A DNA stretch of 63,377 nt, filler included, from Lenisia limosa (lineage: Eukaryota > Protista > Breviatea), in the NCBI GenBank assembly GCA_001655205.1. It is 10 parts of 10 records of this genome, joined end to end, with 100 filler letters (N's around TTAATTAATTAA, not from the genome) between each part and the next. Parts side by side here need not be neighbours in the genome. Positions count along the whole stretch, not along the records: positions 1 to 29,499 come from LPNZ01006268.1; 9 more parts are not named here. One strand, written 5' to 3'. This document shows positions 2,770-29,499 of the stretch, piece by piece. The notes under the pieces were generated by a model that saw only the letters and a program-made list of their open reading frames with translations, was not told the origin of the DNA and did not search any database. Made by a program: the position numbers and the translations under genes. Numbering within the stretch: the first letter of the stretch is position 1; each line of letters begins with the position of its first letter.

Positions 2770-5259
2770 CTAGTAGTCGCACCCAGTGAGATTTTTGATT
2801 AACTCCACAAAGACATCAATGCCTTCTGTTACTGCGCTTTTGTGGACGAACTCGTCTTCAGCTGAATGGATTAATAATAGCGGCAGAATGTTGAACATTG
2901 AAATCAGATGCAAAAAGTACCACCCACCGTGGAGGCGAACAGCAGTGTTTGGGAGGTAAGTGAAGCCGAAAGCATGGCACCCCATGTGCCTCAGGTATCT
3001 CGCGTCAGTGGATGCAGGGAAAATACGGGGCTCGAATTGAACACCCCTGATTATAATGTTGGGTATGTTCGGGAAGGAACATACCTCGATTCAAGAGCCG
3101 TTGTAATGGCTTTGTAAATGGCGGTTTCTGAATAATGAAAGACTGCAAACTGAAGCATATTGTATATTCCAAGTTTTGCCCACCCTGGGAGGAAGGCCGA
3201 CTGAGAATCGGCTTTTGGATGTATTCGAATTTCACACCACACTACAAAAGTCAGCCATGGTCTTTATATGGTGGTGTGACTACTTTCTTGGCAAGGGATG
3301 CGATTAACTCTTCGAATTCTTCATTTTCAATGGATGGTGTCACGCGGAAGTCCACTGTAACACTCAGTTCAGAGGGGACAACGTTGGGCTGAGAGCCGCT
3401 AAAGGATGAGCACTATGTGGTGGGGACAACGTTGGGCTAAGAGCCGCTAAAGGATGAGCACTTGGTGGGGGGCTTCTTTTCTCGGCGTCTTACCACGATT
3501 GGCTGAGCTTACCCTTGCATCATGTTGATGTTGACAGTTGTGACGTCACCTAACTTGGCGCTTTCTGTCTCAATCTTGCCCTTGTTCTCTGCCCTGCACT
3601 TGTTAGCCTTTGTTAAGTTGCTTGACTAACTTGAAAACACAACAGCACTCACCCTTGCTTCTGCTTCTGCTTCTAATGTCTTCTATCCCAATGCAAGAAA
3701 CTACCCTCCCCCAACACTTCTACCTCTCCCCTTTTCACATACCTCATTTTTTGGATTTCATTGATCAAGTCTTGTACTTTTTCCATTGCTGTATCCTCAA
3801 CAAACATTGAGCCGTGACCGGGGTTTCCAGGAGCAATAAACTACAGAGTTATGGCTTATTTTGGTTGCTCAAAGATGGATGCGATATTAAAATAACATGT
3901 ATCGGGCCCATCAATTCTATTAAAAGGAAGACGGCCTACTTTGATCCAGTAAGGTGAACGCTCTCCATAAAAAAGACCCAATTGCGCCGTAGGGTCAGCC
4001 AATCCCTCTTGAATGTCGTAAGTACAAGTAACATATCCGTCCATCCTATTTGAATTCCTCAAACCGTCAATGAAAGTGCCAATATTCAGTTCCTTGAACT
4101 CGGGTGCCTTCATGAAAGTCTCCCACCCATTATGGCCGCCAATTTCTTCATCAGGGGCGAATGCGATCACAATGTTTCTAAAGCAATCAGAGAATAGAAC
4201 TAGGTGAAAGGAACTTGTTTATATTTATACCCCTAGAATAGAATACATCTTTCTGTTTTTACCGGCGTTGGGTATGAAAAAGAACTGTGAATATTTTTTT
4301 TTACAAAATTGTTTTCTATTTCAGCACAAAACTATTGAGCAACCACAGCTACACTTATGTATGCCCATTATACCTCTTTGGAGTCCATCCCTCACGGAGA
4401 AGACGGGCCACTGCTTCCACATGGTGAATGGCACAAATCTAGAATTACTAATTAGAACGGAGAAAAGAATAATAAGAGGGTGATAGGAATTTGGGGAAGT
4501 GGGTAACTCTGAGTTATTCCAACCTTCATATCTTGAGTACCTCTTCCGAAGATATTGCCTATAGTGTGAATAATTATCGTCAAACAACAAACCTTCTTCA
4601 TCCATGTGCGCTGAAAATGGATCATAAGTCCATGTTTGTCCCGTCACAGGCACCTACGTCATAAAAGAAAAGCAAACCGCAAAGGGTGATAAAAAGAAAA
4701 TGACTTGGTTTCAACCAACCCACAAACCACATCCATGTGAGAGTTCAAGCAGAGGGCGGGAAGGTTTGGATCACACCCCTCAATTTTCACAATGCCCATT
4801 GAAGCCCCATTCGCAGTCTATGTGAGTAAGAAAAAGAATTATTATTAAATATGAACTAGTTGAACAAAAGTGGTCAACATGTTGAGTTCATATATTACAT
4901 ATGATATCTATTTCTCGTGCCTTACTTTATACGTCAAAAGAGTGAGGTTGTGTGCTTCAACATAATCTTCAAGGAAGCTCAACACAACATCATAGTTGGT
5001 TTTGGGCTGCATAGACTCCTAAAGCATATGACTGTGAAAATTTTTTATGCCTGCCCCATGGAGCCAAAAGGGGAATCGATTCGGCTTAACAATTATCCCC
5101 TGTAAAGAGATTCTGACAAGCGTCCCGACCCACTTTGATTCGAACGTAGTGTCTGAAGGCGGCAACGGCAAATCCAGGGTCACTTGGTGCTCCGAAGTTG
5201 ATCTTGTTCCCAAGCATCGTACGAAGCCCGCGCTTTAATCCTGAGATAACTGCACTCAT
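2770..5259 (-). CDS. ACY1: Aminoacylase-1 (M20A metallopeptidase family), multi-exon
   Basis: Exons read FRHYVRIK-SMQPKTNY, GCDPNLPALCLNSHMDV, WTYDPFSAHMDEEG, APDEEIGG..EGLADP..FYGERSPYW, LGDVTTVNINMMQGGSQPNVVP..DFRVTP and GFTYLPNTAVRLH..DEFV, all collinear with ACY1 motifs. Stop TAG at 2770-2772; ATG inferred at 5259. Confidence 0.92.
3374..3462. repeat. Two 41-bp direct repeats (period 48) covering a 3' splice site of ACY1
   Basis: ggggacaacgttgggct(g/a)agagccgctaaaggatgagcact at 3374-3414 and 3422-3462, one mismatch. Confidence 0.95.
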
Positions 5260-5836: not shown

Positions 5837-8800
5837 ATGAAGCTCTGGGTACTTCTTTCCCTTTTAGCCTTTTCGGTCTCGGTATTTGGAGGTGGTGGTT
5901 ATGACTGGCGGGTGAAGAGTCCGCATGCCCATTCAGGTAAGTCCTTCCTAAGTCCTCGGTTGATCCCATTCTTCTTGCTTTTTTGGAGTTACTTTCTCAC
6001 TCCCATACAGTTCGTAGTACTTTGATAAATAAACTCTTGGAATTCTATTTACAAATCCCTTATAGAGGTGATATTAATTATTGGTAGTGTGTCCAAAAAT
6101 CATGACCATTTTGTGTAGATGTGCATATCATATGATATAGCATATATATCGCCCGATATAGACTGGTACATTATACTATATACATGACATTCACATTTCA
6201 GACAATAGTCGTGTGAATTCGCATCTTGAACCAGAAGGCCTTTTTATACGGGATACAAAAAGCAAAGAAGCCCTCGTTCAAATCCTTATTGGAGGGAAAA
6301 GGTACGACTGAAGCTGTCTAACGTTTAGTATTGTTAAATACCAAAAGCTTCCTTCCGGTCATATGGGGAAGATACATGATGCTGAAACACGTGAGGTTGT
6401 ATCTCCATGTCCAGGAGACACCCACACCTTTGCCATGGAACAGCTCCTTGGAGGTTTGTACTCTTTCTTCTAATGATGCCTAGTTTTCTCTCGTCCCGAA
6501 CACCGCTACGTTATTACTTCGATACCGGACTGCTTGAAATCGTAAGGGCCCTTGGTGCTAACGTTTCAGTGCCGACAGTTTCTTCACCCTTGTCGTAACA
6601 ATGGATTTCAACGGAAATGTTGAAATTTTAAGACAAGGTCGTTCATTACGATTCATTGTGGTTGACAAGGACGGAAAGACGAGAAGCGTCTTGTACAACA
6701 ATCTTAAAGTCTATGATGCTGAAAGTTTGACACACAAATGAAGGTGATTACCGTTCAGAAACCATTCTCAAGAGTGAAATGGCAGTTGATGGCAAAAGCC
6801 TTCTTTTCAAAGTTCTCGAAGAGGGAAAACTTCCTGTTGGCCTTTACTCATTGGAACCTTCTAACTCTGTAGATCACAATAGACCCGGTTATTACCGACT
6901 CACCACACATTATCGGAAGAAAAAGCGGTACGATGAACACTCCGTTCTAATTGGAAACCAGGGTACAACGCGGAGTTTGGTGTATCAATGACAACAATCA
7001 AGCGCATTGGCCAAAATGACGTGAGTACTTAGTTTGTTATTATGTGTGACCCTTGTAGATTTTGGCAGTAGCTGCTCTCAATGATGGGGAGCAAGGTTTG
7101 ACTCATTGTTTAAAGACTTATTCTTAGATATGAACGAACCATACCATGGAACAGGAAACTTGTATCTTCTGGATAGCGTGTTCAGCACTGGCCACAACCC
7201 TCCAGGACATAACTCAGAAAACATCTGCTCCCTCTCAGATATTGAAGTCCAATATTGTCGGGCTGGATCCAATATCATGGCGGTAGGCATTGTTTTGGTC
7301 AAACTAGTCTAACAAATGTTGCAGTTGGACGATTACGATGGTGATGGAGTTGACGAGCTCTTTGTTTCCAATTCAGGTTTGCTTTGAAAAATTCTTGTCA
7401 TGATGATGCAATAAATAAGAAACATGAAACTAAGAGCCATCTAAACCATCACGTTTTGAACCGGTTCCTCTACGCTAAACAATATAGTCACAAAATCTGC
7501 CGCAATGTTTATGTCTTTGGACAACTTCAACGAGGCAATTCTCTTGGATCTGTCAGATTCTGACAGAAGCAACGCAAATGGATTTGGATGTGGGTTATTG
7601 AGACATTTATTAACAATTTAGCGAGTGCCCTTCAGGTAGACTGCACAGGAAATGGGAAGAAGGACCTTTTGGTATCCTCTCCTGCTCATTGTGGAGCTGT
7701 TTATGGCTTTGTAAGATCTGTGGAAATTGAGCATTTTTCTCATTTTAATAGGAAAATAGAGCCTATTCGAATCTTATTATTGACCAAACAACGAAAGATC
7801 CCAGTAATCATGTTTCAACAAATAGGTAAGAGTTGTCTGTCACATATGTTTCAGTATTGAGTCAGTTGTCCTGAGTGTTACCAAAACAACCAGCCTGAGT
7901 GAATTGGTATGGTGTCTCCTAACTAACATAGTAGATTATGTATATTACATGTGATACACCAAGTCAAAATACCTTCAACTGGATTGTAATGTCCCAAGAA
8001 ACAGAATCTGAAGAGTTAGCTCTTGACCATTTCACAGATGCAGATGGGAAGTGATTGATGTTTTTGAATCTCAAGCAGACTGCTCATCAGAGTTCCAGAT
8101 CTTTCCAAAGCCAATTGTTCGAATGGAAAACTCATGACGTTTTAGACTTTGTATGCTACACAGTTGTACGCTCTTGGAATAATACATGAACATACCTTCC
8201 GGTACACATCGCAAGGTAATTTATGTTAAAGAGAGATTTTTTATGTACGTCTTCACATTTTTAGATTACAAGTCTTTATCCGGCACAACTGAGATTAAAA
8301 AATTTAAACGGTTCAGCTTTGCTGACCTGATAATGTAAATAAACCAGCATTTAAGTTTACCATAAAGTGGTTCAACGGTGACGCTTACTGAACAAGAGGA
8401 GTCGAAAAGTAAAGGAATTCAAGCCAAGTTCACTTTGTGTTGGAATTTGAACAACTCACGCTTTAGCTCCAGAGTATCTTCCCTACTCTACCTACAACAA
8501 TGCGATTCTGTGTAAGCTAGGTCGACTTGTTGACACGTACAGCCTCCACAAGTTGCTACACTCGCCTCCAAGGACACGCATTAGCTGCTCTCATCACAAC
8601 AAATTACTTTCAATCTTTTGCAATCTCAGAGTAGGATACCCTCTGAATTTGACAACAACAGACCATTGCACAGAGATAGACCAAATAGCGCAGAAGAGGT
8701 TAGTGACAGAATAGTGATCAATTTCGATTTTTTGGAACCTAATTGAGCATTTCAATTTTTATCATTTTGAAAAATCATTATTAGTACAAAACTGGAACGG

Positions 8801-11800
8801 GCCAAGTTCACGTCACCAAAAACACTGGGATGAGTAGCTTTTCGAAATACCAAACGCTGAAGCCGCCAGTGTTCAACCAAGGTGAATTCTCAAATGGATA
8901 GAAATTGCTTCACAAGTCTATTAGAACACAGTGACGGTTTAGATGGACGATTCGGTTGGGCTATGACCTCCTTCGATGTCAACGGTGATGGACTCTCAGA
9001 TCTGGTAAGTCCAATGACACTCTGATACACTCTGGATGAACCCTCGTGTTATCTTTGTTCATCATTTCGACTTCATATCATACTTTGTTTTAACTAAGAT
9101 GCTGCAACCATGCTCTCACCCTTCAGTTTGTTGGAGAGCCAGGTACTCTCAAAGGAACAGTTCACTTGTTTCTGGGTACTTTCAATGGTGAAATTGAGAG
9201 TTCACCAGTGTGGAAAGCAGAAGGAGAATACGACTTTGGTGAATTTGGGTTGGCAATCATGTTACTGACTGCTAAGCACTACACTTTCTCATGCGGATAT
9301 GAACAACGATGGCGTTGAAGACATTATCATTTCAGCACCTTGGAATGCTGCCCAGTTGGCTTCTATTTGTCTAACTATACAGGTCTGCTTCAGGAACCGT
9401 CTATGTCTACTACACTCGCAATCGTGTGAGTGGATATGAACCAGCTGCCGAGCGCTACATTAACACCAAGGTTGGAAAACGCTAATGTTTTATGGTTCTA
9501 GCCCGACATTACCATTTCTGGAAGTGAATGCCCTCACAGCGGATTTGGACTGAAGCTGGCAACCGGAGACTACAACAACGATGGTTTGTCTTCTTATTCT
9601 TAAGTACAAGGTCTGTTTGATATCGCAATTTCCTCTATCAAACATCGTTTTGAAAATTGCGATAAAGAAGCTCATTCTGAGGAGTGGAAGCAGGCTGGTG
9701 GAGCTGTCTTTGTGTACAAAGGTTTGAGTACCTTTATGTTCCCATCAAATAGGGGTCAAGCACGCAGACTTGGAACTGTCAATCGTAACGCACCCTGATT
9801 TATCATACGAGAGCAATTCAATGGCCACAATTGTGTACAAGATCACAAATCACGGTCCACATTCAGTTACAGCAGCTAATGTTACTGTATGTTTTGACAA
9901 CAAGCTTCATACTTCAGTTCACAATGACACGACACTTGTCTATTGAAACCGCCGGTCACAACTGCTTCAACACCCTCAATGATGCTGGAGAGTAAGTGTC
10001 ACTGGATCTTATTGTATAGAATGGTGGGGACGTTTCAAACAGGCCCTTTGGCTATTGGGGAGGATTTTGAGCTGACAACGTCAATGATAGTCAGCAGCAA
10101 TCGGGTATTTTGATTTACTTCTTAGATCAGTCCAAATGCAGTAACAGAGCAAAGCGCATCAATTGTTGTCCAATCCGGCGACCCAGATGTTTTACCGGAG
10201 TTTGACATGGAAGACAACCACAGTCACTCCCTCGACTTCCAACTCACATTCGACAGTACTCTTGAACCAGGCTTTGTGACTCAGACGATCACAGCTGGGC
10301 AAAATGCAGAGCTTCAAGTGACTTTCTACAATCAAGGTCCGACAGTTGCAGTCAATGTTCCTTTCAAAATCGTGTATGTGAACACCATGACCGTTGTGAA
10401 AAGACCAATCTACTGTGGACCAAGTATAAAGGTAAACAGTTCAGTTTTTGTGATATCATTTAGAGCCACACTATGTACATTATCACGTGCACTATTCCAA
10501 CAGTTGCTTACAAGACCATTGTGGCTAGTAGTTTCATAGTCAGCGTGTCTCCGAGCAAGAGTGCCGGTAACCTCAGTCTGAGAACATACATTCAGTCCGT
10601 TAATACGGCGACACATGTAGGTTTTTTTGTAACTCACTTGTCTAGATAATATCGCACACTGGTGTCAAATACGCAACCGTCAAAACTACTCGTCAAAGTA
10701 ACATGGAGTTCAATCTTGTTCTTGCTAAAAATCAATTATCTGGAAAGGTATGTGTAAATCACAACGAATTGAGACTTCACAACCCCGTAACTTGATAGCA
10801 ATACCCAGCCACCGTGGAAGTGACCAATCATGGTCCAAGTTCTGCCAAATCCCTGACAACGTCACTTCAACTCGCACACCCGTTGACAGGACCTGCCATC
10901 AGCGTATGCCCACGAATATGTGACACTACAGGGCACAATTGTATCGTGTCCATCCGGTGCAACATGCTCATCAATGTCAAACGGAATTGCAGCATCGTTC
11001 AGTGAAGTTCCTGTGGACAGCACAGTTTTCATTCCATTCACCGCTTTTGCTGATGCGGCACTTGACGAACAGGTACTTAGTGCCCAAGAAATCAACCACA
11101 CAGTTGTTGAAGCATCGCATTTCCAGTTCTTGGGAACTCGGCCAATCCGATGTAACTGATTCTGACAGTGCTATCAAGCACTCATACTATCTTGTAGGCT
11201 TAGTAGCTCGTTATCTTTCAGGTAAGCGAAGCGGTTCCAAATGGGTCCAGTATTGATTCGGAAGGGATTGTGAGTATTTCAACAAGTGAAAAGGTGAGGT
11301 AACAACAATAAGTTTCATTTTTCAGGGAGTATTTTCAATCATTGTTTCCAACAAAGGACCTTCAAATGTCCATGGGTAAGGCTCACAACTCTCATTTATC
11401 AAGACTTCATGCATCAATTCAAATGTTTAAAACCATCGGCGGTGTTGAGAGCGTGCATGAATACAACCCAGTAACTTCTGATTTCGACCTCACAAAATGT
11501 ACTGGTGTTGATGGGACTGGAATGGAGTGCGCAGTGGACAACATCAACGCCAATGAAGTCAGTTCTTTGGCTGAATACTCCGTGATTATAACCACTCTAT
11601 TCTCCACAGGCATTAACAATTGGAACAATTGAGTCTGCTGCATTGACTACCGACGTGAACAGTATCCGATGCACAGTTGTCGTATCACGAATTACCCCGA
11701 GTAGGCTGTTTTTATTATGACGCTTAAGGCTTGGAAGACAGATTATATCCTGGGAGCGTTATTGAAGAATCTTCTGTTATTAAAGTTGGTTGTGGGGAGA

Positions 11801-14800
11801 GATTGAAAGATGTGCAACACGGAAGATATGATTTCATATAATATCTCTGAAAGTTCACATTTCATTAACTAGATTGGGAGAAATCTAGACATTAGCGCAT
11901 TTGTGTCTGGTCCAGCTTCAACAAACGCTGGGGAGTTATTTTTTGCAGTTGTACAGGTGAGTCATGATGGGAAGGGGGTATTGTCAAAGACTACTGTAAA
12001 CCATAAAAAGAATGATGTAGACAACTATAGAACTTTCTCCCTCTAATGTGTGATATGAGTTTTACTGGACAGATTTATGATTCTTCTAAATTGATATGCC
12101 AGGTGTCAAATAATGGTCCTACTGCCACCACAGATCTTATGTACGAAGTCTTTGCTCCCGAATCCATGATGTCTCTTGACTGGCTCGTTTTACCAGAATC
12201 TGCGTGTGTTCAAGAGGGTGAGATATACCAATTTATTCTTACGGTTCAGCCACGAAGTGGAGCTGCTCTAAGGCTTCGCTTTCTTCATTGGAGAGAATCC
12301 AAACTAGCTTCAAAGCCATCATACCAGCTGACCACGAGGGTTACAAAGATGCAGAATTCCGTGTCTCTGGAATTGATTTTAATGTGGGGACTTTTTGATT
12401 CATATTTGAACTTGTTGTAATATTCTTCATCCAAATGGTTTAGAATGACCACATTGACACCGACTTGAGCAACAACGATTTCGCGTTTATGTTCAACATT
12501 TCAAATGAAAACAATCTCTTTGTTTCATCGTCATCCTTCCCGACACCTCCAAATAAAATTGTGACTGGCAAAGTATGGACCTGTTTCTGTAACTCAAATT
12601 TAGACTTGTGAACTATCTGTTTTGGTAATGAACACCGGTCCTTCTCAAATGCCAACTGCTGGGGCTATATCATTCACACTCACAGCAGAGCAGAGCAATG
12701 TAGTTCAATTCATAAACCTTGAAGATTCATGTACTCTTACTGGTTTAAAAGTTCTTTGTCCATTCCCAAAATTGGCCCCAAACGCTCAAAATACTTTAAG
12801 ACTCAACGTTAAGTACAAATTTGAGGCGCTGGCAAAGGAGGTTGTCCCTTGTTTCTCAATAACATTGTAGTACCTTTATGAGTTTTCATTTGGCGATCTG
12901 ACGACTATTTCATCCCACATTGTTGACAACTCCGCTGATATCTCTGTGGCCACTTCAACTTACCCTGGTGGGTTACTTTAAAACCTTTGGATTGCAAGAC
13001 ACAATTTAATATTAAATACATTATAAGATGAACGACAGATTGAATTTGGTACACCCCATAGATCATGAACACAAACAAATTAATGAGCTAATATCAATAG
13101 AAACGACTGTTTTGCCTTCAGGGTTGTTCCAAGGCTACATCAGAGTTTCCAATAAAGGCCCTGCGCAACAAAACAATGTCGTTATTACGTTAGACTCTAC
13201 ACATGGTACGTGAGATAATAAGTCTTCAATGACAATATTTCTGAATCAATAAATTATGAACAAAACGTTACACGTCAGCGATTGAGCATTTGACATATTT
13301 CCTGTCATTGACCTGACTAGGAACGTTGGAAACAGCCCCAACCGGCACTTCATGCATTGGATTGATATGTACAATCCCAACCTTCATTGCTGGGTAAGGC
13401 ATCTCATCTTTTTTTACTTTTAGCCAAACGTTTATTTTCAAAATATCTGGCAACGCGCCGTCAAGCGATTCCGTAACCATTTCAATTGAAGGCACTGTGG
13501 CACACCAAAGCAACGACCCTAATACTGACAACGACAGCAGTTCGATTGTCTTGAAAACAGCGTCAGGTGCAGATTTGAGAGTTGAGGTTTGTGCTTATTG
13601 AAGTTATATACCAACAGACAAGTCTAATGATACACTTCATCTCTGATGAATTAGGTCAAAGCTGTTGTAGCCGGGGAGGCCACTGACACTGTTTTACACG
13701 GAACCGAGTTCTCAGTTTGGTCATTCGGTTTCTACTTACTCCCAGATGGCTGCTTTGAATGTCAATAATGGGCCAACTGAAACGGCTGCCAAAACTGTTC
13801 TCTTTGTTCCTGAGGTTTGTTCAATTGCTGTCTTATCAAATAGGGAATGTTTTTGGTAACGGCAGTGTCTGGATACCAGGCGTCCAATTGCCCTGCGGAT
13901 TCGAATAGTAGGTCACCTTTAGTTACACACACGCAGTGAAAACTGGATATCTTTAATCCAGTAGGTTTAACCGGCCCTAATTGTCAACTTGAATGGAGTC
14001 ACGCATCACTTAGTGTGGGATGTAGGGTAACAAGTGCAGAGGACTTGATGGGAGTTGTACTTCGCTCCATTCTCTCGATAAATATGTATAAATACATCGA
14101 TATTTCTCCGATCTTTTTTGGACCACGGTGTAACCCTAGACTTGATAATGCCAACTCTATAGGCTCAGCAATTGACGTCAGCATCTGCAGTCCTTCGGCT
14201 GCCGACTGTGTTTACGGAACCTTCATTCATTGTAAGTTGCAAGTGCAATCATGATTATGCAGGTCAAATCGCAATCGATAATTGTTGGAGATAGTGACCC
14301 CGACACATCCAACAATGTGGGGACCCGGGTTATCAACGCTGTTGCTGGTAAGTGATGCAGGCTGTTTTCATAGTCCAAGGAGCCGACCTCCTTCTGTCAA
14401 TAAGCTTCCAAGAAACGGTCAACTCAGGCACCTCTCTTCCAGTCAATGTAATCTGCTCAAATTATGGTCCTTCCACGGCCCTCTCACCCGAAGTGACACT
14501 TCACATTCCTGAAGTGATGACTTATGATGTTGAAAGCGCTTCTGTGGCAGTTTTGGTACTCAATGCTACCACTGTAGTCTTCACGTTGCCACAAATGGAG
14601 CCCTTCGACAAGGTGGTCATTTCTTTCAGCCTGGCAGTTGGTAGTGCAATTCCCACCCAAGAGCGTGAAATCACAGCCTCAATATCGGATGCCACTCTCC
14701 CTGACAACATTTTGAAGAACAACGAAGACTCTCGACCAATTATGTTTCTGGCAACAGCTGAAGTTGACATTTTCCTCAAGCTTCTTAGCACTAAGAGTAG

Positions 14801-17800
14801 CCACCTAAAGAGGGGAGAAACTGGTGTCATGGTGTTGACTGTAAAGAACAAGGGTCCAGCATTAGTGCAACATGCGGTGATAGAGTTATTATTCCCTGAC
14901 ACTAGTGTATCGTTAGGTACTGATTTGTCCGTTGTGGCCACGGAAATTCAGCCTGGAAGTGACGCGTCCTTGCAGGCAGTTGTGACAATACCCACTGACT
15001 TCAACGACAACTACATCATTTTCACAGGACGAATGGGTGCAACTGCAGTCAGCCCCAGGGTCACAGACAAGCAAACCGTCATCATCATTACAGAGAGTGA
15101 TATTACTGCAAGTATTAGAGTTGTTGATGATATGATAATGGGCGAATTAGCGCAATTTGTGATTTCTGGCGGTAACAAAGGCCCATCCACAGCGTTACAG
15201 TTGACAATAGTGATGACCATTCCTTCCGACTTGGTGTTTGAGAAGTCTTCTGGTGAGGCTGCCTGCATCCACAAAGATGGCGTGTTGACCTGTGTTGTTG
15301 CTGCACTTGAGCCGAAAAAGTCATTTGGCCAAATAGTGACAGTGGCAGTTTTGGACGCAGAAGAGCTATCGGTGAGATTGGAGATTGACTTATTTTGGAA
15401 CCATCATTATTGTGATCTACTCATAACATACTATACTCTCAACTTGTGAGGATTTTACCTGCTATTAACCCAATAGGGATCATTGTCATGCACGATCACC
15501 GCTAGCTCCCCGCTGAAGAGCCCCTTTACCGTATTCAGCACGGAATACAATGTCGTTAGGTCTGCTGACACTGCCGTCATTCCATTCTTCTCTGCAATGC
15601 TGGACATTGGTCGAAATGTTCCGTTCAGTCTTAGGGTTCTCAACATTGGGCCTTCTTCAGCTAAGAACCTTCAAGTACTAATTGAGTTTTCTAACGACTT
15701 ACAACTGACATCGGTGTTGGTAGAAGGATGCATTGTTCTTTCCAATACTGTGACTTGCCAATTGGCTGAGTTGCTGCCTCGAGAGACGAAACTACTCAGC
15801 GGTTACATGCTTGTTGCTCCAAGTCAACATGCAGTTACTTCTGACATCAGCAGCACTGTATCCAACAACAGGGACAACAACCCCTCCAATAACCAAGTTA
15901 TTTCTGGTGTTCAGTTTATTGAGACTTCTGGTTAGTCAACTTTGGTCTTATTATGTGTTTAGATATTGGAAGCAGTATATCTGTTCAGCCCAAAGTCCCC
16001 ATAATTGGAGGGGCGGCCGTTTTGACTGTTTGTTTTCTTTCGAGCTTACTTCTTTAGACTGCAGTATCAAACCTCGGCCCTCTCTCGTCAGGTGTAGTGA
16101 CAGCTTTAGTCACACTTCCGGACATTGGAAACCCAACAACGATACCTGATGAATGCACGTTGGAGTCTTCGTTACAATACAAGTTGGTTAATTACCTTGT
16201 CACTTTGTAGCTGTGTCATTGATGACATCACTTCAAATGAAAAAGTACAATTGCGGTAAGATAGATGGTTTCAACATAAACTCAAAGCCCAACTGTTTTC
16301 TCATAAGTCTAGCTTTTGGTACACAGTCAACACAGAATTGTCCGAAAACACCGCAATATCAGCTTCCGTCCTTGTGTCAGGATTGAAAAATGACCCAAAT
16401 ACTGACAACAATATGGACCTTGTCTACACCGAGCTGATTAAGGCCTCAACAGTAACAATGTTCACTTCGCTCTACCCCAGGTGAGATCCAAGTTATGATG
16501 ACAATCAAGAGTGTCTGTTCCAGTTGGAGGGTTCTTGAGAGTATCAAGTCATATCACAAACATCGGCCCTTCGTCGTGTTCATCATTTCGAGTGGAGTTT
16601 GATGAAAGCGCCTCTCTCAGGCAGTCGACAACAGAATGTGAAATGATGGAGTCGCAAGACAAGGCCAGCTGTGACTATCTTGGCTGTAACGTCACTTCGA
16701 TTGACCTTGCTCAAAACAAGGATATTTCGGTTAGTTAGTGACCGTAAATTGATTTCACAGATGGTCTGCGTGCTTTCGGTTTTGTCTGAGGCAGAAGCGG
16801 ATAAGATTGCAGCCAGAACAGCAATGGTAATAGCACTTGGTGACTGACATTGTAGTCATCCATTCATTTTGTCGGTCTTAATGGATGCAATGTTGAGTCG
16901 GACATTACAGTGTCGTTTTCAATTGAAGTGAGTTTGCAATGTTACTCACATTTTAGCTGGACAAAACTGCAGACCTTTCAGTTGGAATGTTGGCTTCGCC
17001 TACTATTTCCGGTAATCGAGTTCTGAAGAACAAAGTGACAGTTTACAACAAGGGCCCTGCAACAGCCAAATCCGTGGGTTGCATTGCCATGACTTAGCCT
17101 TTAGCCGTTTATTCTGCTTCATCCCGTCGACCTTCCTTCAAGCATGTCAAGCTGGACTGGAGCAACGGGGTGCCTTGAATTGCCCTCAGGTGACATTAAG
17201 TGCACACTCTCGGACATAGCGGTGAGTTAAGTGCACCTCTCGGACATAGCGGTAAGTTAAGTGCAGACATAGCGGTAAGTTAAGTGCACCTCTCGGACGG
17301 TGAGTTAAACCCTTCTGTCTCAAAACAGATACATAATATATGTATGCAAAATATTTCTACTGTCATGATATGAATAACAAAACATCTAAACCCCTTTCCT
17401 TATTCTGATGGCTGGACAGGCCAACGCCCGGAGTGACATTCAAGTGGGCAGACTCATGGATAAGCAACTTGGTAGTTTACCTTATGACAGAATCAATTCC
17501 ACTGTCACGGCCATGTCTCTAACTGAGGACCCAAGGTAGGCTGAAGGTCCTCTGGAGATCTCTAACCAAATAGTGGCGATCAAAACTTCGGTGTATCGTC
17601 ATCTCGAATCAGGAGGAGTGCGGATGTGCTGGTCAAGATCCGCGTTGTTCCTTTGGAAATTGCCAAGGACGGCAACTTGAAGGTTTGAACTATGACTTAC
17701 AGCTTATATTAAGACGGTGGTGACGACAACAAATAGCGGACCTGCTGACGCCCGCAACGTGGTTACTGTCATTCATCTTCCCTATTACACTGATATGGCC

Positions 17801-19635
17801 CACTTGTCCTTCTCTTACTCTAATGCCAAGTGTATTGTTGTTCAGGGAACGGTAAGCGCTGTCATAAGTCTAAGCAGCTAGACAAACATTGAGTGCACTT
17901 CAGACACCATTGAAATGCTCCAAACATCCAACGTTGTGATCAAGGTTGGGCGTGTCAATTTGGTGCATTTTTTGATTCGGCTACAGCGAACTGAGATCTT
18001 ATGATGAAGGTTAAGGCAACAGAGGAGCCCGGTGTAAACCTTGGTACATTCGACCTTACTGCCGCCACAATGGCCCTTGAAGATGACTTGAACATGGATA
18101 ACAACGCAGCTGAGGCGTCTGCCGTTATTCTGCCGGCAACTTGCGACCCTAGGGTGATCATTAATTTCAGATGCCGTATATAGACTAGTTTTTTAGTTGT
18201 TTGACTTCTCAGGTCCAATTCAGCGCCTGGCCAGTGCAGAATAAGGCAGGTAACCTCATTACATTCCAAGCTAACGTTGTCAACCCAGGCCCTTCCCCCA
18301 CTGGTTAGCATGGTTCTTGTGAGGATGTGTTGTTGAAGTCTGATGTTCAAGGTCCAATCACGACAGTCTTCTCTATCCCGGCAGAGTTCGTTGTATTGCC
18401 TCCTCCAATTGGCTGTGTTGTCTCTGGGATTTCAGGCATGGGTAGTGAAGTGGCATGTTCCCGAATTGATCTTCCACCCAAGTCTCAAGCTGACCCCTGT
18501 CAGCCCAATGAAGAAGGCTGTTGGACTGTTAACATTGAGGTTCTCTCAAATCTGTCACCATCATCACTCGGGACTCACGTTGCGGCTGTTTCAATTACTT
18601 CTGCCCTTGATTCTGACATGACCAACAACAATGGCTCATTGCTGGTGGAGTCTACGACAGATGCAGCCTTGCAGGTCACTGTTCTCCCCACACTTGGGTT
18701 CTACAGTGGTACGAATACTTCAGCGATCAGTGTAATATCTACATTGTAGCATTTGTTATTCATCGTATTTCTATGATTCACAGTTGTTGAAATTGTTGAC
18801 CATGTTACCCCACTTACCTCTTCAGGCAACTCAGACTCAGGCATAATGGTTGCGAGCAGCGACACTGACATTGCGTTTCAGTTTTCGATTCTCAACCCTG
18901 GCACGTCAGCGGCAACCGACTGCGTGCTAAAAGTGGACAGCCTCTTGCCTGAGGTAAGCCACACTCTGCTGCCTCAGGTTCTAGGGTACCTCGTATGGAG
19001 CGTTCAGCGTCAAGGCGGACATGAAGACCGCCTTCGGAAGGGAGGCCATCCATGGTCACGATGCCAAGTGCACAGTGCAAGACCTCACGCTAACCTGTGA
19101 CCTTGGCACTGTCTGGGAACAGAGTGCTGTCGCCTTTGTTCCCTCCACCGTCACGGTCACATTCTACCAAATTCAGCGGAATGACACAGTCGACTTCGAG
19201 AGCACTGTTGGTGTTAGCTCAGGGTGGCCTGAAGCTGCGGCCAACTCAACCACGAAGTTCCGGTTGGTGGCATAGTATGTCACATTGAGTGTGATGAATT
19301 TCTGTTTTGTTTTTGACAAACACAGGGTAATTGGAAAGACTGTGAGTTTGAGGAAACAAGAGATTATTGAAGAGGAAGCGGACAACACTCTCAATAGGAA
19401 TATTTCAATTGGTGGGTGTCTGTAGGTATTGACCGCTCAGCTGGTGGCTTGCTTGGACTGGCGCTGGTGGCCTTCCTTATCAAGCGGGGATTCTTCAAAA
19501 GCAAGAATCACCCTGATAACTACGATGAAGGCGAGGGTAAGCAAGCGTAACTATTCTGACCGTCAGGACTTGGGGAATTGGGCTCTCCCACCGAGCCTGA
19601 TGACGACCTTGGCTCCCCCACTCCTAACCTCACTG
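5837..19635 (+). CDS. Giant integrin-alpha-like type I membrane protein (signal peptide, N-terminal domain, FG-GAP beta-propeller, ~18 DUF11/Ig-like stalk repeats, TM, GFFK tail); last exon unresolved
   Basis: Signal peptide MKLWVLLSLLAFSVSVFG. FG-GAP/Ca-loop segments DDYDGDGVDELFV (~7328), DCTGNGKKDLLVSSP (~7639), RFGWAMTSFDVNGDGLSDL (8948-9005), FG..DMNNDGVEDIIISAP (~9295), FGLKLATGDYNNDG (~9544). Seventeen NxGP motifs plus one NPGT variant between 9847 and 18900. TM AGGLLGLALVAFLI followed by KRGFFKS at 19482-19502. Dozens of short GT-AG introns. Confidence 0.88.
17196..17308 (+). repeat. Four degenerate ~23-31-bp tandem copies of an exon-end plus 5' splice site inside the integrin gene
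   Basis: ttaagtgcac(a)ctctcggacatagcg-gt(g/a)ag repeated four times with internal deletions. Confidence 0.92.
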
Positions 19636-19786: not shown

Positions 19787-22700
19787 TTAGAGTCTCTTCC
19801 TCGCCAGTTCAGCGGTGTACTTGTCAGGAACACCATCCTGTAGTAACTCCTTGATCTTATCTTGGCGGAATCGCTAAATAGTAAGAAACATTAAAAGAAG
19901 ACAGAACGATATTATATCATATAATATTTTATTCTGGGATAGACTCACGAGCATTTCATTGTCGAAGCCCCCCCAAACCTCCACCTTCTCAGCGTGGATT
20001 TTCTGGTCGCGATCGAAGGATGTTGGTTGCTTTGCTAATGCACGCTCTTGACGAAGTTGTTGTTCACGTTCGTGGATTTGGTTCTTAAGGGGTAAGTAGA
20101 AAACAGGAAGGGACCAAGAAAACGTTAAAGCTTGAAAACCCTCCAACCTCTAATATTTGTTTATGGGACCTATTTCTATCAACAGTCATAGCCTGTGTTC
20201 TCTTTTCGGCTTCAATCTGCTTCTCCTAAAAAGTGAGCTCCTGAAAAGGCAACAGCACCGCCTTGTTCATACAGGGTATTGTAAAGGAAGTAAAGAATTG
20301 ACAAAGGCTCGTATTTCCATTTTGAAGGAAGCCCCCTGGCAAACCTGTGCGGCAACAACACGGTCGAACTCGTCACGCTCCATACGGGCTTGGGCTGCAA
20401 GACGAAGTTCTGCGGAGGTAAATCGCAGAACAAAGCGTGTAGTTTCCTTGGCCCAAAACAGTCCAGGAGCATTTGTTTTTATGGGCTCATGATGTTAAAA
20501 ATCCAAAAATTGCTCCCTCTTGGTATTGTCATAGCATAGGAACTATTAGGAAGAGAGCCAGCCATACCTTTGTCTCTCTTTTGGGCAGCGTTCGCCTCCA
20601 TCAAGTCAGCCTAGATGGTCGTGAATATTGGATGGTGTGGTCAAAAATTCAATTCCAGTACAATAACTATATTTTTTGAGGATTTAATGTAACATTTGAA
20701 CTTGTCGAGAGCTTAATATACAGCCAATATTGGGTAGCAACAGTTCTGACAAAAAAGGTCTGCAAAGCAACCAAACAATACCTGCCTTTTGACCTGTTTC
20801 TCAGCTTCAGCCTTCTCCTTGGCTCTGAAGTCCCGTTCTCTCTGGTCGGCCGCGCGGCGAGCTCTCAACGCGTCCCGGTCTGCCTCATGGTCACTTGTAG
20901 ACTTCTTCATCGTCATCACCTATGGTATGAAATGCGAACCAGTATAATTATAAAAAACTGGACTGAATCTTCCACAAAACGAAGTTCTCAATGAAAAGAT
21001 GAAACCTATTGTGTTGGCCACATTTTCCAAAAAATATCGTGAGCTGCATAACCAAAGGCAAGGACGAAAATTCTATGAGTGCTTTGTACCTGTTGAACAT
21101 CGTTCGCCTTTCTCTTCTTGATCATTGCTTGTTCCTCTTCATAAGCTTGTTGCCGGGATTCGCGTTCTTGGAGGTAGCGAGCAACACGACTATTCAGTAA
21201 TAAACAAAACGAGAGCATCCCAAAAAAAAGCAGAAAATAGTCATTTGAGCCACGTACAGGTCTTCCTCCTTCTCCTGCTGCTTGCGGTTCGATTTGATTT
21301 GAATTAACCGGTCGTTTTCACCCATAACTTCGTCCATCAGCGACCTAGCTGGGTGAAGAAAACATTGGGACGAGGGCAACAAACTATGAAAGAAAAATAA
21401 ATAACAGAAGAAATAAATATGGATAGAATACTTTGATATCACATGATATAGAGACAAGAACATCAAGGAACTTCCGACACGAGCTTTTACAGCGCCATAA
21501 TGATTTCTGCAATCACAGTACCTTTGCTTAGTTTTGCGCAGAGCAGCCTTTCTCTCCTCTTCATCCTTCAACAGCTGAACGGATCAGTAAATGTGCTCTG
21601 GAGACACCACCAACCTGGACGTCTCTGAGCATGGCTGCTTGCTCCTGCTCGCGCATTTCGCGTTCAACCTCACGTGCTTGGTCTGGAGTAGTGAGGACAT
21701 TGTTGGGTGAAACAATTAAGTCCATCGATCAAAAAGCATATAGCCACCCACCTCTTTCCTTGATCTGCGTCCTGATAGCGGCAGCTCCTGCCTTGAGAGT
21801 CAAGACATGCTCCTCATCCTTCTTGCGCTGGCTGGAAAGGTCAGAAATACTCAAACAGAAGGGACGTTACATTTCTGTTTCTCTCTTCTGTTTGGACAAC
21901 ATCATATCATGGGTTCGCGACTCATCCTCCTTCAGACGACGCTGGATTTCTTTCTGAAAGAAATGTGAGGGGAAGTGAAAGGGGAACCAGTGTTGAAAAA
22001 AAACTTTGATTTGTTAATTATCCTGTAAAATATCAAGAGTTACATCAACCAACCTTCTCCTTGATTTGCTTTTCGCGGATTGCGGCGCATTTGGCGTAAC
22101 TTGCCATGCTGGCTACTCTCTTGGCTTCGTCTACAGCATTAGCTTGCAAGCCTTGACAGGTACCGTTGAATATATTACAACGGGGCTGAATATCTCCATG
22201 AATTCATTAATAATAATCCTGCTATTGTACTTGTCCTGTTCACGTTACATTCCGTCCTGGGCAAAAGCCCCTCACCGGTTTCAAGAAGAAGTAGACCGTC
22301 CGCCTTCTGTTGGATGGATTTGTTACTGTGTTCGCGCTCAATTTCCTCTGAACTGTCAATTGCCGATCTAACCAGAGAGTACCAGATCCCTTCCAATCAC
22401 CCCCCCCCCCCCCCCCNNNNNNNNNNNNNNNNNNNNNNNNNNNNNNNNNNNNNNNNNNNNNNNNNNNNNNNNNNNNNNNNNNNNNNNNTTTCGGATGGCT
22501 ACGATGGTAAGTCCGGCAAATGTTAGGGTGAATTTAAGCTATCAGGATATTCACGATAACCCATGGATGTTTAAGTAAGCTTGTCCATGGAGAATGATTG
22601 GGGTTTCTTTCAGCACGAGAAGCAAACACCAACAACTGAAATTTCATTCTGTCCGGACTTGGATTCCCTTCAACAGCGTTTTATTGTGTGGTTGCAGACC

Positions 22701-24015: not shown

Positions 24016-25560
24016 ATGCAATATGATGAACATATCTGGAGAATCATCAACCATGGGCACTGTTCTTTTCGTGTAAAGTGAGACCACTTTCTTTTGTGTG
24101 GTCTTCTGACGCCATTTAGGACTGTAACACAAAACTTTTGCAAGAATGAGTACAATGCAACCGGTCTCTGTGGACGTAGAGCTTGTCCTCTCGCCAACTC
24201 TCGCTATGCAACAATCAAAGAACAGAATGGTATGTTGGTCCTTTGTTTGCTTTCTGCATTTAAGCGTAAATCAGTAAGTAGTATATCCCCCATTCACTGG
24301 ATAGGAAAGCTGTTTCTGCTGACCAAAGTTATTGAGAGGTCACATACCCCTTCAAAGCTGTGGGCTTACAAGAAGCTTTCTCCAAAATATGCTGATGCCC
24401 TCCAGCAAGTAAGGGTTTCATATTTAGGTGTGAACTCATTGTATAGATTACAGACGCTCTTGAGTTTTGGCCTCGATGGATGATTCGTAAGGTCAAACAG
24501 CGGCATACAAAGCTGACTGAGTATCTCATTAGACGCAAGAGGCTTCGCAAGAAGTACAAGTCGGTTTAGTTTTTATGTGAAGAGGAAAAAAATAACGTAC
24601 ATAGGCCTGAGATTGTCACAGAGTCTCGCAAAGTTGCAAAGAGACTTGCGCGCAGGGAAGAGAAGGCTCTTATCGCTGCCAATATTGAGAAGCAGATTGA
24701 AAAGGAAGTTGTTGATCGCTTGAAACAGGTCTGTTGGTCTCTGACTTTTTCAAATCCATAATCACCGTTGTAACAAACAAGGGAACCTATGGTGATATTT
24801 ACAATTTCCCGAAGCAAGCCTTCGACAGTGTCATTGAAGAACAAGAGATCGAGGTTGGTGTTATGTTCGGAATAAGACCGCTGATGAACTAGGAGGAGCA
24901 CCCTGATGAGCTTTATGATCCCGAGGCGGCTGCTGGTAAGTAGGGTTTCTAATGGGGACAGAGGAAAATGCTTTTTGTAAATAAAGCATCAATCCCAGTT
25001 TTTCTAGTGAATCCAACCAATCTGATAATCTTACGATGTAGCTGCTAGACCAGAGGGATTCGGTTCTGATGACGAGGAGTCTGGAAGTGATGTTGGCTCG
25101 GAGGAGGATTCCGACGAGGGTATTTCGGCTGAAGACTCTGATGAAGAAGGAGCTGAGGTAAGCACACGTTCCCAGTAAAAAGACTGTCCATTTTATTTAG
25201 AGAGGATACTTTGTTGATCATATTATATATTCAAAACCTCGGAGGTTGTTCTGACTTTTATAGGGTGACGAGTTCCAGTTCCCATCAGATTTGGATGATC
25301 TTGAGGATGACTCGGATTCTGAAGGCGAAATGGACGAACCGGAGCAACCACCTAAGAAGCTAAAGAAGAAGGGAAAGAAGAAGAAGAGTATGAGGGTATT
25401 TCTCCCCCCCCCCCTTTTTTTTTTTGCCTTNNNNNNNNNNAGAAGGCAGGTGAGTGTCTCCAGTCCTGGACCAAGGCCATGTTCATCTGCTCAAAGATGT
25501 CCCATGTGTCTGCAGCCCAACTCCGGTATGAGAACCGCGAGTCGTCTAAGGACAAGGTTG
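24016..25560 (+). CDS. MAK16: MAK16 ribosome biogenesis protein, multi-exon; 3' end approximate (crosses a small gap)
   Basis: [114 protein letters not shown], then an acidic/basic tail. Confidence 0.95.
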
Positions 25561-28261: not shown

Positions 28262-28670
28262 ATCACACCGTCCATATATCTGTGAATTTTCCTCTATCTG
28301 TGAAAACAATCCAAATGAACCTTTTCCTTGATAGAATAAGTTGAGAATTACAGTATTAATCATATAATGTTAATTCATATCATTTTTGAGGATCATCTTC
28401 AGACTTATTTCAATTAAAAACAACCACCAGAACATGTACGACAGAAGACAAAGGTTTAACCCATTTTTATGACGATATAATTGATTTTACATTTAANNNN
28501 NNNNNNNNNNNNNNNNNNNNNNNNNNNNNNNNNNNNNNNNNNNNNNNNNNNNNNNNNNNNNNNTTACGCCAATTTTCTTAGTTATATGCCATATTTTTAG
28601 CAAAATTTTTCGATTAGTTCAAATAAATTCACAGATTGAGGAAAATTCACGGATATATGGACGGTGGGAT
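28262..28670. mobile_element. Non-autonomous TIR element (~400 bp including a gap)
   Basis: 28267-28304 and 28628-28665 are inverted repeats matching at 36/38 nt, extendable to ~43 nt; TAATAT flanks both sides. Confidence 0.65.
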
Positions 28671-28953: not shown

Positions 28954-29499
28954 GGCTCAAACAATTGGGAATCCAAATAGAAATCTGCCAGTGGGACCCA
29001 AACGCTTCCCCTCCCCCCCCCCAANNNNNNNNNNCGAATTGGAAATCGAGACAGAGCCGGCAGCCGCTCAACTCAACTAATGGTATCTATTTATGTTTTG
29101 TACAGTGCATTTTTCTTGTTCTTTTTCATTGCTATTGCAAATCGCCCTTTTGTTATTGTGTAACAGTGGTCACGGTGAGCAACTCTTTGATGAGTTTAAA
29201 GAGGAATCTCATGAATCTTTTTATTAACTTATTTACCTCTCATTTACCTAATTTGGGTATATTGGTTGTTGCTGCGGTGGTTGTTGTNNNNNNNNNNGGA
29301 AAGCAGTTGGAACAAACAGACGGAAAAAGTAAACATTCTTTGACCCAATGACGACTCTCATTCTAAATGTGTGGGCGGCGAGGAGTTAATTTGTTTATAG
29401 TACCCCCATGTTTATTTGTTTCCCTTTCTACAAGAATTCGAGTAAGGGTTGAGGTTCTGGGCCACTTTTTTTGAGACCAGTAATGTTTCTAAAAGCAGT

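Follow-up and report, generated by a model that had tools for sequence, protein, structure and literature searches.

We describe here a gene in a 63,377-nucleotide (nt) stretch of DNA from the breviate Lenisia limosa (GenBank assembly GCA_001655205.1; the whole stretch, ten parts of ten records joined by filler, is called the window hereafter), which probably encodes a mosaic, namely a type I adhesion receptor of integrin-alpha design assembled within one gene from building blocks of bacterial adhesins. The gene occupies 5837-19550 on the + strand, in the part taken from LPNZ01006268.1, and a single-pass exon model gives it ~80 exons, ~79 introns and ~9.2 kilobases (kb) of coding sequence for a protein of ~3060 amino acids (aa). 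The encoded domains are, in order, a signal peptide, a pre-propeller domain, an FG-GAP propeller, ~19 DUF11-type repeats, one transmembrane helix and the motif KRGFFKS. A bacterial-only pre-propeller domain, a bacterial-type stalk and an integrin-type anchor would accordingly be found in one polypeptide with a fully eukaryotic gene structure.

The original prediction, made from this sequence, had read a spliced peptide at 6661-6900 that ends in ITIDP just before the first FG blade, and had taken it for the end of an N-terminal domain found in many bacterial FG-GAP proteins. The peptide is real and is spread over three exons: exon 5 (6570-6724) contains FFTLVVTMDFNGNVEIL and SVLYNNLKVYDAE and ends with VDKDGKTRSVLYNNLKVYDAE, exon 6 (6759-6835) reads (K)TILKSEMAVDGKSLLFKVLEEGKLP, and exon 7 (6873-6927) carries ITIDPVITDSPHIIGRKS, which begins with the ITIDP junction motif and continues as a linker into blade 1. 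The introns between them are 34 nt (6725-6758, GT..CAG) and 37 nt (6836-6872, GT..TAG, with CTAAC at −12) in length, and another of 34 nt (6928-6961) separates exon 7 from the first-blade exon at 6962-7020 (YNAEFGVSM...), which was placed by hand and agrees in phase and sequence. An independent exon chain reproduced the hand-read exons 5-7 exactly and skipped exon 6962-7020.

For comparison with bacteria, a profile of 261 positions was built from 85 bacterial segments of 250 residues up to IDP and run against every six-frame open stretch of the window with a length of 12 aa or more (1460 in total). Exon 5 was the only significant match (E-value 1.5e-4, 17.8-18.0 bits, positions 185-229 of 261); the runner-up stretch had an E-value of 6.6, and 2000 shuffles of exon 5 reached at most 5.2 bits versus the observed 17.8. 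That the profile selects exactly this frame among 1460 stretches, combined with the shuffle test, indicates a reading of exon 5 beyond chance, and the result is not circular because the matched positions lie outside the motif used for collecting the bacterial set. The original prediction was to fall if no significant bacterial match existed, and exon 5 supplies one. Exon 6 gave a weak collinear match (231-250), and with a tighter profile of 192 positions exons 5, 6 and 7 aligned at 116-160, 163-182 and 188-192, respectively, collinear and nearly gap-free over both tiny introns, the match of exon 7 to the profile end being partly circular because its motif served to collect the set. In single-sequence searches, the best 14 bacterial matches of exon 5 all fell between 79 and 32 residues ahead of the bacterial IDP; for exon 6 the matches lay mostly 30 to 9 residues ahead of it, and for exon 7 on IDP itself. 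The conserved strands L.L.v.GdL...l.Y..LkVwDA.G..L are thus present in exon 5 by profile, and the bacterial junction A.YPxTIDP is found as LPITIDP at the collinear position with the first FG blade 20 residues on. The window junction has L where the bacterial set has Y, a residue that is invariant in this set because of how it was collected.

The claim of a bacterial-style domain therefore stands for exons 5-7, where the match is significant and collinear, and does not extend to exons 2-4, in which no similarity was found; homology as judged by sequence comparison is established for the last ~80 residues only. The motif of the bacterial first half, W.l.L.L..GRG...EWY.N..GLEQGFTL..RP, was not detectable in exons 2-4, and a by-eye likeness to it in the same exons (MEQLL..FSRPE) was not significant. 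The span from signal peptide to IDP is ~190 aa in window and bacterial proteins alike. A Pfam and NCBIfam scan of the N-terminal exons gave no match, and look-alikes of exon 5 in the ESM Atlas were unnamed short clusters only and uninformative.

The gene model on which these readings stand lies in eukaryotic DNA with a GC content of ~40-46%. An ATG at 5837 on the + strand opens exon 1 (5837-5936), which carries the start codon and the hydrophobic signal peptide MKLWVLLSLLAFSVSVFG by sequence reading and exon chain, and which is followed by an intron of 265 nt. Exons 2-4 (6202-6301, 6329-6453 and 6484-6541), placed by the exon chain with introns of 27 and 30 nt between them, presumably encode the first half of the pre-propeller domain. 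Because introns so short called for checking, a separate exon finder was written, which works by dynamic programming; its codon log-odds were trained on long open exons and its splice matrices on 18 unambiguous tiny introns, and it also applies a prior on length. These 18 introns lie between long unambiguous open reading frames (ORFs) further down the gene, and the model used is a single pass with a penalty of −6. Iterated re-training ran away to 160 exons and was discarded. The model holds 56 introns of at most 45 nt, with a length mode of 28-32 nt and 11 of the 56 being multiples of three. Among the six tiny introns that border exons 2-7, all but one have CTAAC or CTAAT 11-15 nt ahead of the 3' AG. 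Open exons with lengths of 998, 454 and 400 nt contain no stop codon, and read depth across the gene is even (37-39) in the DNA run holding the stretch. Exons were searched individually and the chain served for phase, length and stop checks, splice sites having been placed from sequence and homology. Among animals, ultra-short introns have been reported for myxobolid myxozoans and Dicyema only (PMC13644364).

The bacterial pattern named in the original prediction proved to be common. A DNA scan for A-x-Y-P-x-T-I-D-P with one genome per prokaryotic species gave at least 120 prokaryotic loci, and those listed come from Planctomycetota, Verrucomicrobiota, Acidobacteriota, Bacteroidota, Myxococcota-like lineages, Actinomycetota, candidate phyla and one Thermoplasmata archaeon. 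Most of the listed loci read L.Y.gLkVwDA.G..L.a.......l.l.VdD..A.YPxTIDP in frame, with the motif ~210-340 residues into a long ORF and repeat sequence following in most; the upstream pattern is absent from about a dozen of the listed loci, some of which resemble chance matches. Five full-length examples were scanned, and every one is an FG-GAP (PF01839) or FG-GAP_2 (PF14312) protein, bearing out that the pattern closes an N-terminal domain, ~190 aa in length, of many FG-GAP proteins. No Pfam or NCBIfam model covers the first ~250 residues of these five proteins, and a by-product of the analysis is a widespread prokaryotic domain without a model in the copies of Pfam and NCBIfam searched. In a minority of the listed loci (e.g. 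L001, L004, L025, L096 and L101) the domain precedes repeats other than FG-GAP.

A bacterial representative (L032:7000-7701:-) was folded with an alignment of 78 sequences, giving a model with a predicted local distance difference test (pLDDT) score of 90.2 that consists of one helix and ~18 strands. Foldseek found weak matches to this model (E-value 1.5e-3, template modelling score 0.40-0.47), and an exhaustive structural search returned 77 chains at Z of at least 8, the top ones with Z of 10-12.3 and a root-mean-square deviation (rmsd) of 3.1-3.8 Å over 160-186 residues. Most of the matches listed are galactose-mutarotase-like supersandwiches, including polysaccharide lyases, GH38/GH92 mannosidases, glucoamylase and aldose 1-epimerases. 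The prokaryotic pre-propeller domain is thus predicted with high confidence, from this model, to fold as a galactose-mutarotase-like supersandwich, the last seven strands of which are the counterpart of exons 5-7. The similarity to these enzymes is one of fold, with a sequence identity of 4-12% and no sequence-level link, and a search of PDB sequences with the bacterial N-domain profile gave nothing significant and no sequence-related solved structure. Sharing the supersandwich fold is no evidence that the domain binds sugar.

The propeller spans 6962-9721 on the + strand in many small exons and was located by Pfam FG-GAP matches on three of them (E-values 1.4e-4, which is at the 22.1-bit cut-off, 1.1e-3 and 0.011) together with a motif scan. 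Six blades are recognisable by motif, with FGVSM at 6976, DYDGDG at 7331, DCTGNG at 7639, FGWAM/DVNGDG at 8951, FGLAI/DMNNDG at 9244-9296 and FGLKL/DYNNDG at 9544, and none was found for one blade within 7750-8900. Cation loops occur in the last three blades (DVNGDG at 8975, DMNNDG at 9296 and DYNNDG at 9568), with a further one, the DYDGDG at 7331, in blade 2. The top PDB sequence matches of one blade exon were integrin alpha-5, alpha-L, alpha-X, alpha-M and alpha-V, all weak (best E-value 0.053). Bacterial propellers usually carry cation loops in all blades, and Chouhan et al. 2011 described integrin-type propellers in bacteria for the propeller only, not for a pre-propeller domain (PMC3192720).

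Between blades 3 and 5, the ~1.1 kb of 7750-8900 shows no recognisable FG-GAP motif and holds low-confidence exons only; it may hide blade 4 and an inserted segment. Within a 122-nt intron of the propeller (9005-9126), ~60 nt at 9012-9073 belong to a dispersed multi-copy repeat that occurs in ~200 contigs and has a word depth of ~5500 versus 37 elsewhere in the source run; assembly contigs break there, and one copy is present in the RNA run. This repeat may be a MITE-like (miniature inverted-repeat transposable element) or introner-like element.

An intron of just 31 nt separates blade 7 from the stalk (9753-19262, + strand), in which Pfam, a motif table and a folded unit identify ~19 DUF11-type beta-sandwich repeats. 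The repeat motif N-x-G-P-S/A/T recurs between 9848 and 18894 together with two conserved Cys residues, and Pfam DUF11 (PF01345) was matched with E-values of 7.6e-14 and 6.2e-09 (52.4 and 36.6 bits versus a cut-off of 24.6). Beside DUF11 there were CARDB and faint Integrin_A_Ig_3 matches, the latter below cut-off (E-values 0.019 and 0.14), while no NCBIfam model matched the stalk repeats, PDB sequence searches with DUF11 exons gave nothing significant, and Pfam had no match on the C-terminal exons, where no integrin leg domain was seen, and on most stalk exons. One repeat unit, folded with 53 relatives to a pLDDT of 92.7, superposes on integrin calf-1 (alphaV 598-708) with a Z of 9.8 and an rmsd of 3.0 Å over 97 residues. 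Because this match ties with the adhesin CLIPPER domain, CBM2 and AP mu domains, which are unrelated beta-sandwiches, it indicates fold compatibility and not membership. Intron positions relative to the repeat motif are not conserved, and therefore give no argument on duplication after intron gain.

When the longest exon (332 aa) was scored against 1.84 billion representatives, the only close match (more than 31% identity) was the window's own ORF, and the other matches, 487 proteins with an E-value of at most 1e-3, did not exceed 31% identity. Compared with the bacterial relatives, the repeat residues N, G, P and the two Cys are invariant. The best 39 of the 487 look prokaryotic on inspection, with unbroken ORFs of 2300-4800 aa that end in sortase-type or type IX secretion system (T9SS) tails without GFFK. 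Ten of the stalk matches were looked up and are uninterrupted ORFs reaching 4808 aa, on contigs as long as 278 kb, the named ones being annotated as 'uncharacterized repeat protein (TIGR01451 family)'. A word-indexed search of 5.8 billion clusters with the same exon found the window's own ORF only.

The last exon (19441-19550, + strand), assigned by sequence reading and exon chain, encodes the transmembrane helix GGLLGLALVAFLI, after which KRGFFKSKNHPDNYDEGEGKQA and a stop codon follow; the short acidic tail is 22 residues in length. KRGFFKS comes directly after the helix, its last residue being S versus the R of KxGFFKR. K-x-G-F-F-K is the signature of integrin alpha. Together with the signal peptide, this single C-terminal helix, as read from the sequence, gives the type I topology. 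The propeller does not lie at the mature N-terminus, with ~190 residues (exons 1-7) preceding the first FG blade, and thigh, calf-1 and calf-2 (Pfam Integrin_A_Ig_1/2/3) were not found except for the faint Integrin_A_Ig_3 matches described above. No integrin beta gene is present within the window. The 'integrin' label of the original prediction thus fits the propeller with its Ca-type loops, the single transmembrane helix and KRGFFKS, and does not fit the legs, which are ~19 DUF11-type repeats instead of thigh and calf domains: the encoded protein is an integrin-alpha-like type I receptor, not a canonical one. Kang et al. (bioRxiv 10.1101/2020.04.29.069435) have given minimum criteria for non-metazoan integrin alpha (ITGA) and described ITGAs with extra domains at either end, and by these criteria the L. 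limosa protein would qualify as an ITGA homologue that carries additional domains.

Set beside known systems, the protein shares with integrin alpha a signal peptide, an FG-GAP propeller with D-x-N-x-D-G loops in the last three blades, beta-sandwich legs, a single transmembrane helix and a K-x-G-F-F-K-type motif. It differs in the ~190 aa domain ahead of the propeller, in the ~19 DUF11-type repeats that serve as legs and in its length of ~3060 aa, compared with 700-800 aa for animal ITGA (bioRxiv 10.1101/2020.04.29.069435). The prokaryotic YPxTIDP FG-GAP proteins have the same succession of signal peptide, N-domain of ~190 aa (all-beta in bacteria), junction and FG-GAP blades. By contrast, the window protein has L for the Y of YP and no detectable EWY.N..GLEQGFTL, and where the prokaryotic proteins have T9SS, PEP-CTERM-like or other sorting signals at the C-terminus and are free of introns, the window gene ends in the GFFK tail. 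With the giant DUF11/TIGR01451 surface proteins of bacteria and archaea, the stalk shares N-x-G-P-S-x-A, the two Cys and the ADL start, and it differs from them by an identity of 25-31%, dozens of introns of 26-38 nt and a eukaryote-type anchor.

We propose that the ~190 aa domain behind the signal peptide is a supersandwich that would pass through the LPITIDP junction straight into the FG-GAP propeller, and that both would form a Ca-dependent ligand-binding head, possibly for glycans. The DUF11-type repeats would hold this head tens of nanometres off the membrane, and the GFFK tail, the element that clasps the beta subunit in integrins, suggests that a beta-type partner may exist here as well. 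As to its origin, ectodomain modules of bacterial ancestry may have been gained at an early date, may have taken on the structure of host genes completely, and may then have been joined to an integrin-type anchor.

The mosaic is favoured because both modules, N-domain and stalk, match bacterial families by sequence, whereas integrin legs are matched by fold only. The relatives of these two modules, as detected, appear to be prokaryotic surface proteins only, which leans toward an old transfer or a mosaic over ancient retention. Retention would mean that the gene keeps the architecture ancestral to integrin alpha, a bacterial-type FG-GAP adhesin with pre-propeller supersandwich and DUF11/calf-like legs, and that in canonical integrins the N-domain later disappeared while the legs shrank to thigh, calf-1 and calf-2. 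The GFFK tail and the placement of cation loops mainly in the last three blades, an arrangement also seen in integrins, agree with it, as do the superposition on calf-1 and the faint Integrin_A_Ig_3 matches. However, no eukaryotic relative of the longest exon was found in the 1.84 or the 5.8 billion sequences, Pfam DUF11 matches the stalk repeats much more strongly than any of the integrin domains does, the calf-1 match is tied with the other beta-sandwiches, and we know of no described integrin alpha with this pre-propeller domain. We consider retention unlikely, and it keeps that much weight because no donor clade stands out, identity to bacteria is low (~25-31%) with no close bacterial donor, and the intron load looks host-like. 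The opposite extreme is the transfer of a complete bacterial adhesin gene that was then colonised by ~79 introns, with the GFFK anchor arising by chance or convergence. All ectodomain modules that could be identified have relatives among prokaryotes only, and many bacterial relatives likewise end in one hydrophobic helix with basic residues, yet G-F-F-K right after the helix is improbable by chance (~1e-4 by rough estimate) and occurs in none of the best 39 stalk matches inspected. Neither does any sampled bacterial protein join the N-domain with DUF11 repeats: the N-domain is absent from the best 150 of the 487 stalk matches, and the stalk exon is unmatched among the at least 120 N-domain loci listed. 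We therefore give whole-gene transfer a poor chance. If transfer did take place, ~79 introns in ~9.2 kb of coding sequence would represent an extreme intron colonisation.

Several points weigh against the mosaic as well. The GFFK tail argues for a real integrin ancestry of at least the anchor, and no single donor architecture is known, because the sampled carriers never combine N-domain and DUF11 repeats. When compared with the upstream half of the bacterial profile, exons 2-4 did not outscore shuffles, so that a complete supersandwich is attributed to the window protein on account of matching length only. The region 7750-8900 and many micro-exons are poorly modelled, one blade is not placed, and the function outlined above is entirely inferred. 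Finally, the sole RNA run (poly-A) of the same study contains no part of the gene, just a dispersed repeat. This last result, combined with an exon chain that is model-dependent and was over-fitted in its iterated version, would also agree with a decaying or never-expressed locus, or with two adjacent genes wrongly chained, which would leave no biological product. Such a reading is very improbable in our judgement, given that the 998-, 454- and 400-nt exons have been kept free of stops, that the repeat residues are invariant, that only the 31-nt intron lies between propeller and stalk, and that both termini are coherent, with a signal peptide at the start and a transmembrane helix, tail and stop at the end.

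Both integrin chains, alpha and beta, have been followed back to the common ancestor of animals, fungi and amoebae, and to our knowledge a protein linking the bacterial propeller and integrin architectures has been missing so far. With an integrin propeller pattern, helix and GFFK on one side and a bacterial supersandwich and DUF11-type stalk on the other, the L. limosa protein could conceivably represent an intermediate stage, still extant, on the way from bacterial FG-GAP adhesins to integrin alpha, although we regard this as unlikely. Were it true, integrin alpha would descend from such an adhesin and the calf domains would be reduced DUF11 repeats. Whichever the origin, ideas on the assembly of integrin alpha can now be tested on an actual gene.

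Outside the receptor gene, a MAK16 ribosome-biogenesis gene with small exons lies at 24082-24758 on the + strand (Pfam Ribosomal_L28e, 8.1e-19; Mak16 C-terminal, 6.2e-11), and the neighbourhood is therefore ordinary eukaryotic housekeeping DNA. Open stretches at 2773-4218 on the − strand bear a tentative resemblance to aminoacylase-1 / M20 peptidase; Pfam gave no match on two pieces of them. At 1095-1655 on the + strand, a 187-aa open stretch without a Pfam match is of Lys/Glu-rich low complexity (KKEEEKKKK...) and has a strong purine skew, the GC skew being 0.41 at 1001-2000. The 3' third of the LPNZ01006268.1 piece is a gapped scaffold, with N-runs at 22417-22488, 25431-25440, 28497-28563, 29025-29034 and 29288-29297, several of them flanked by G or C homopolymers.

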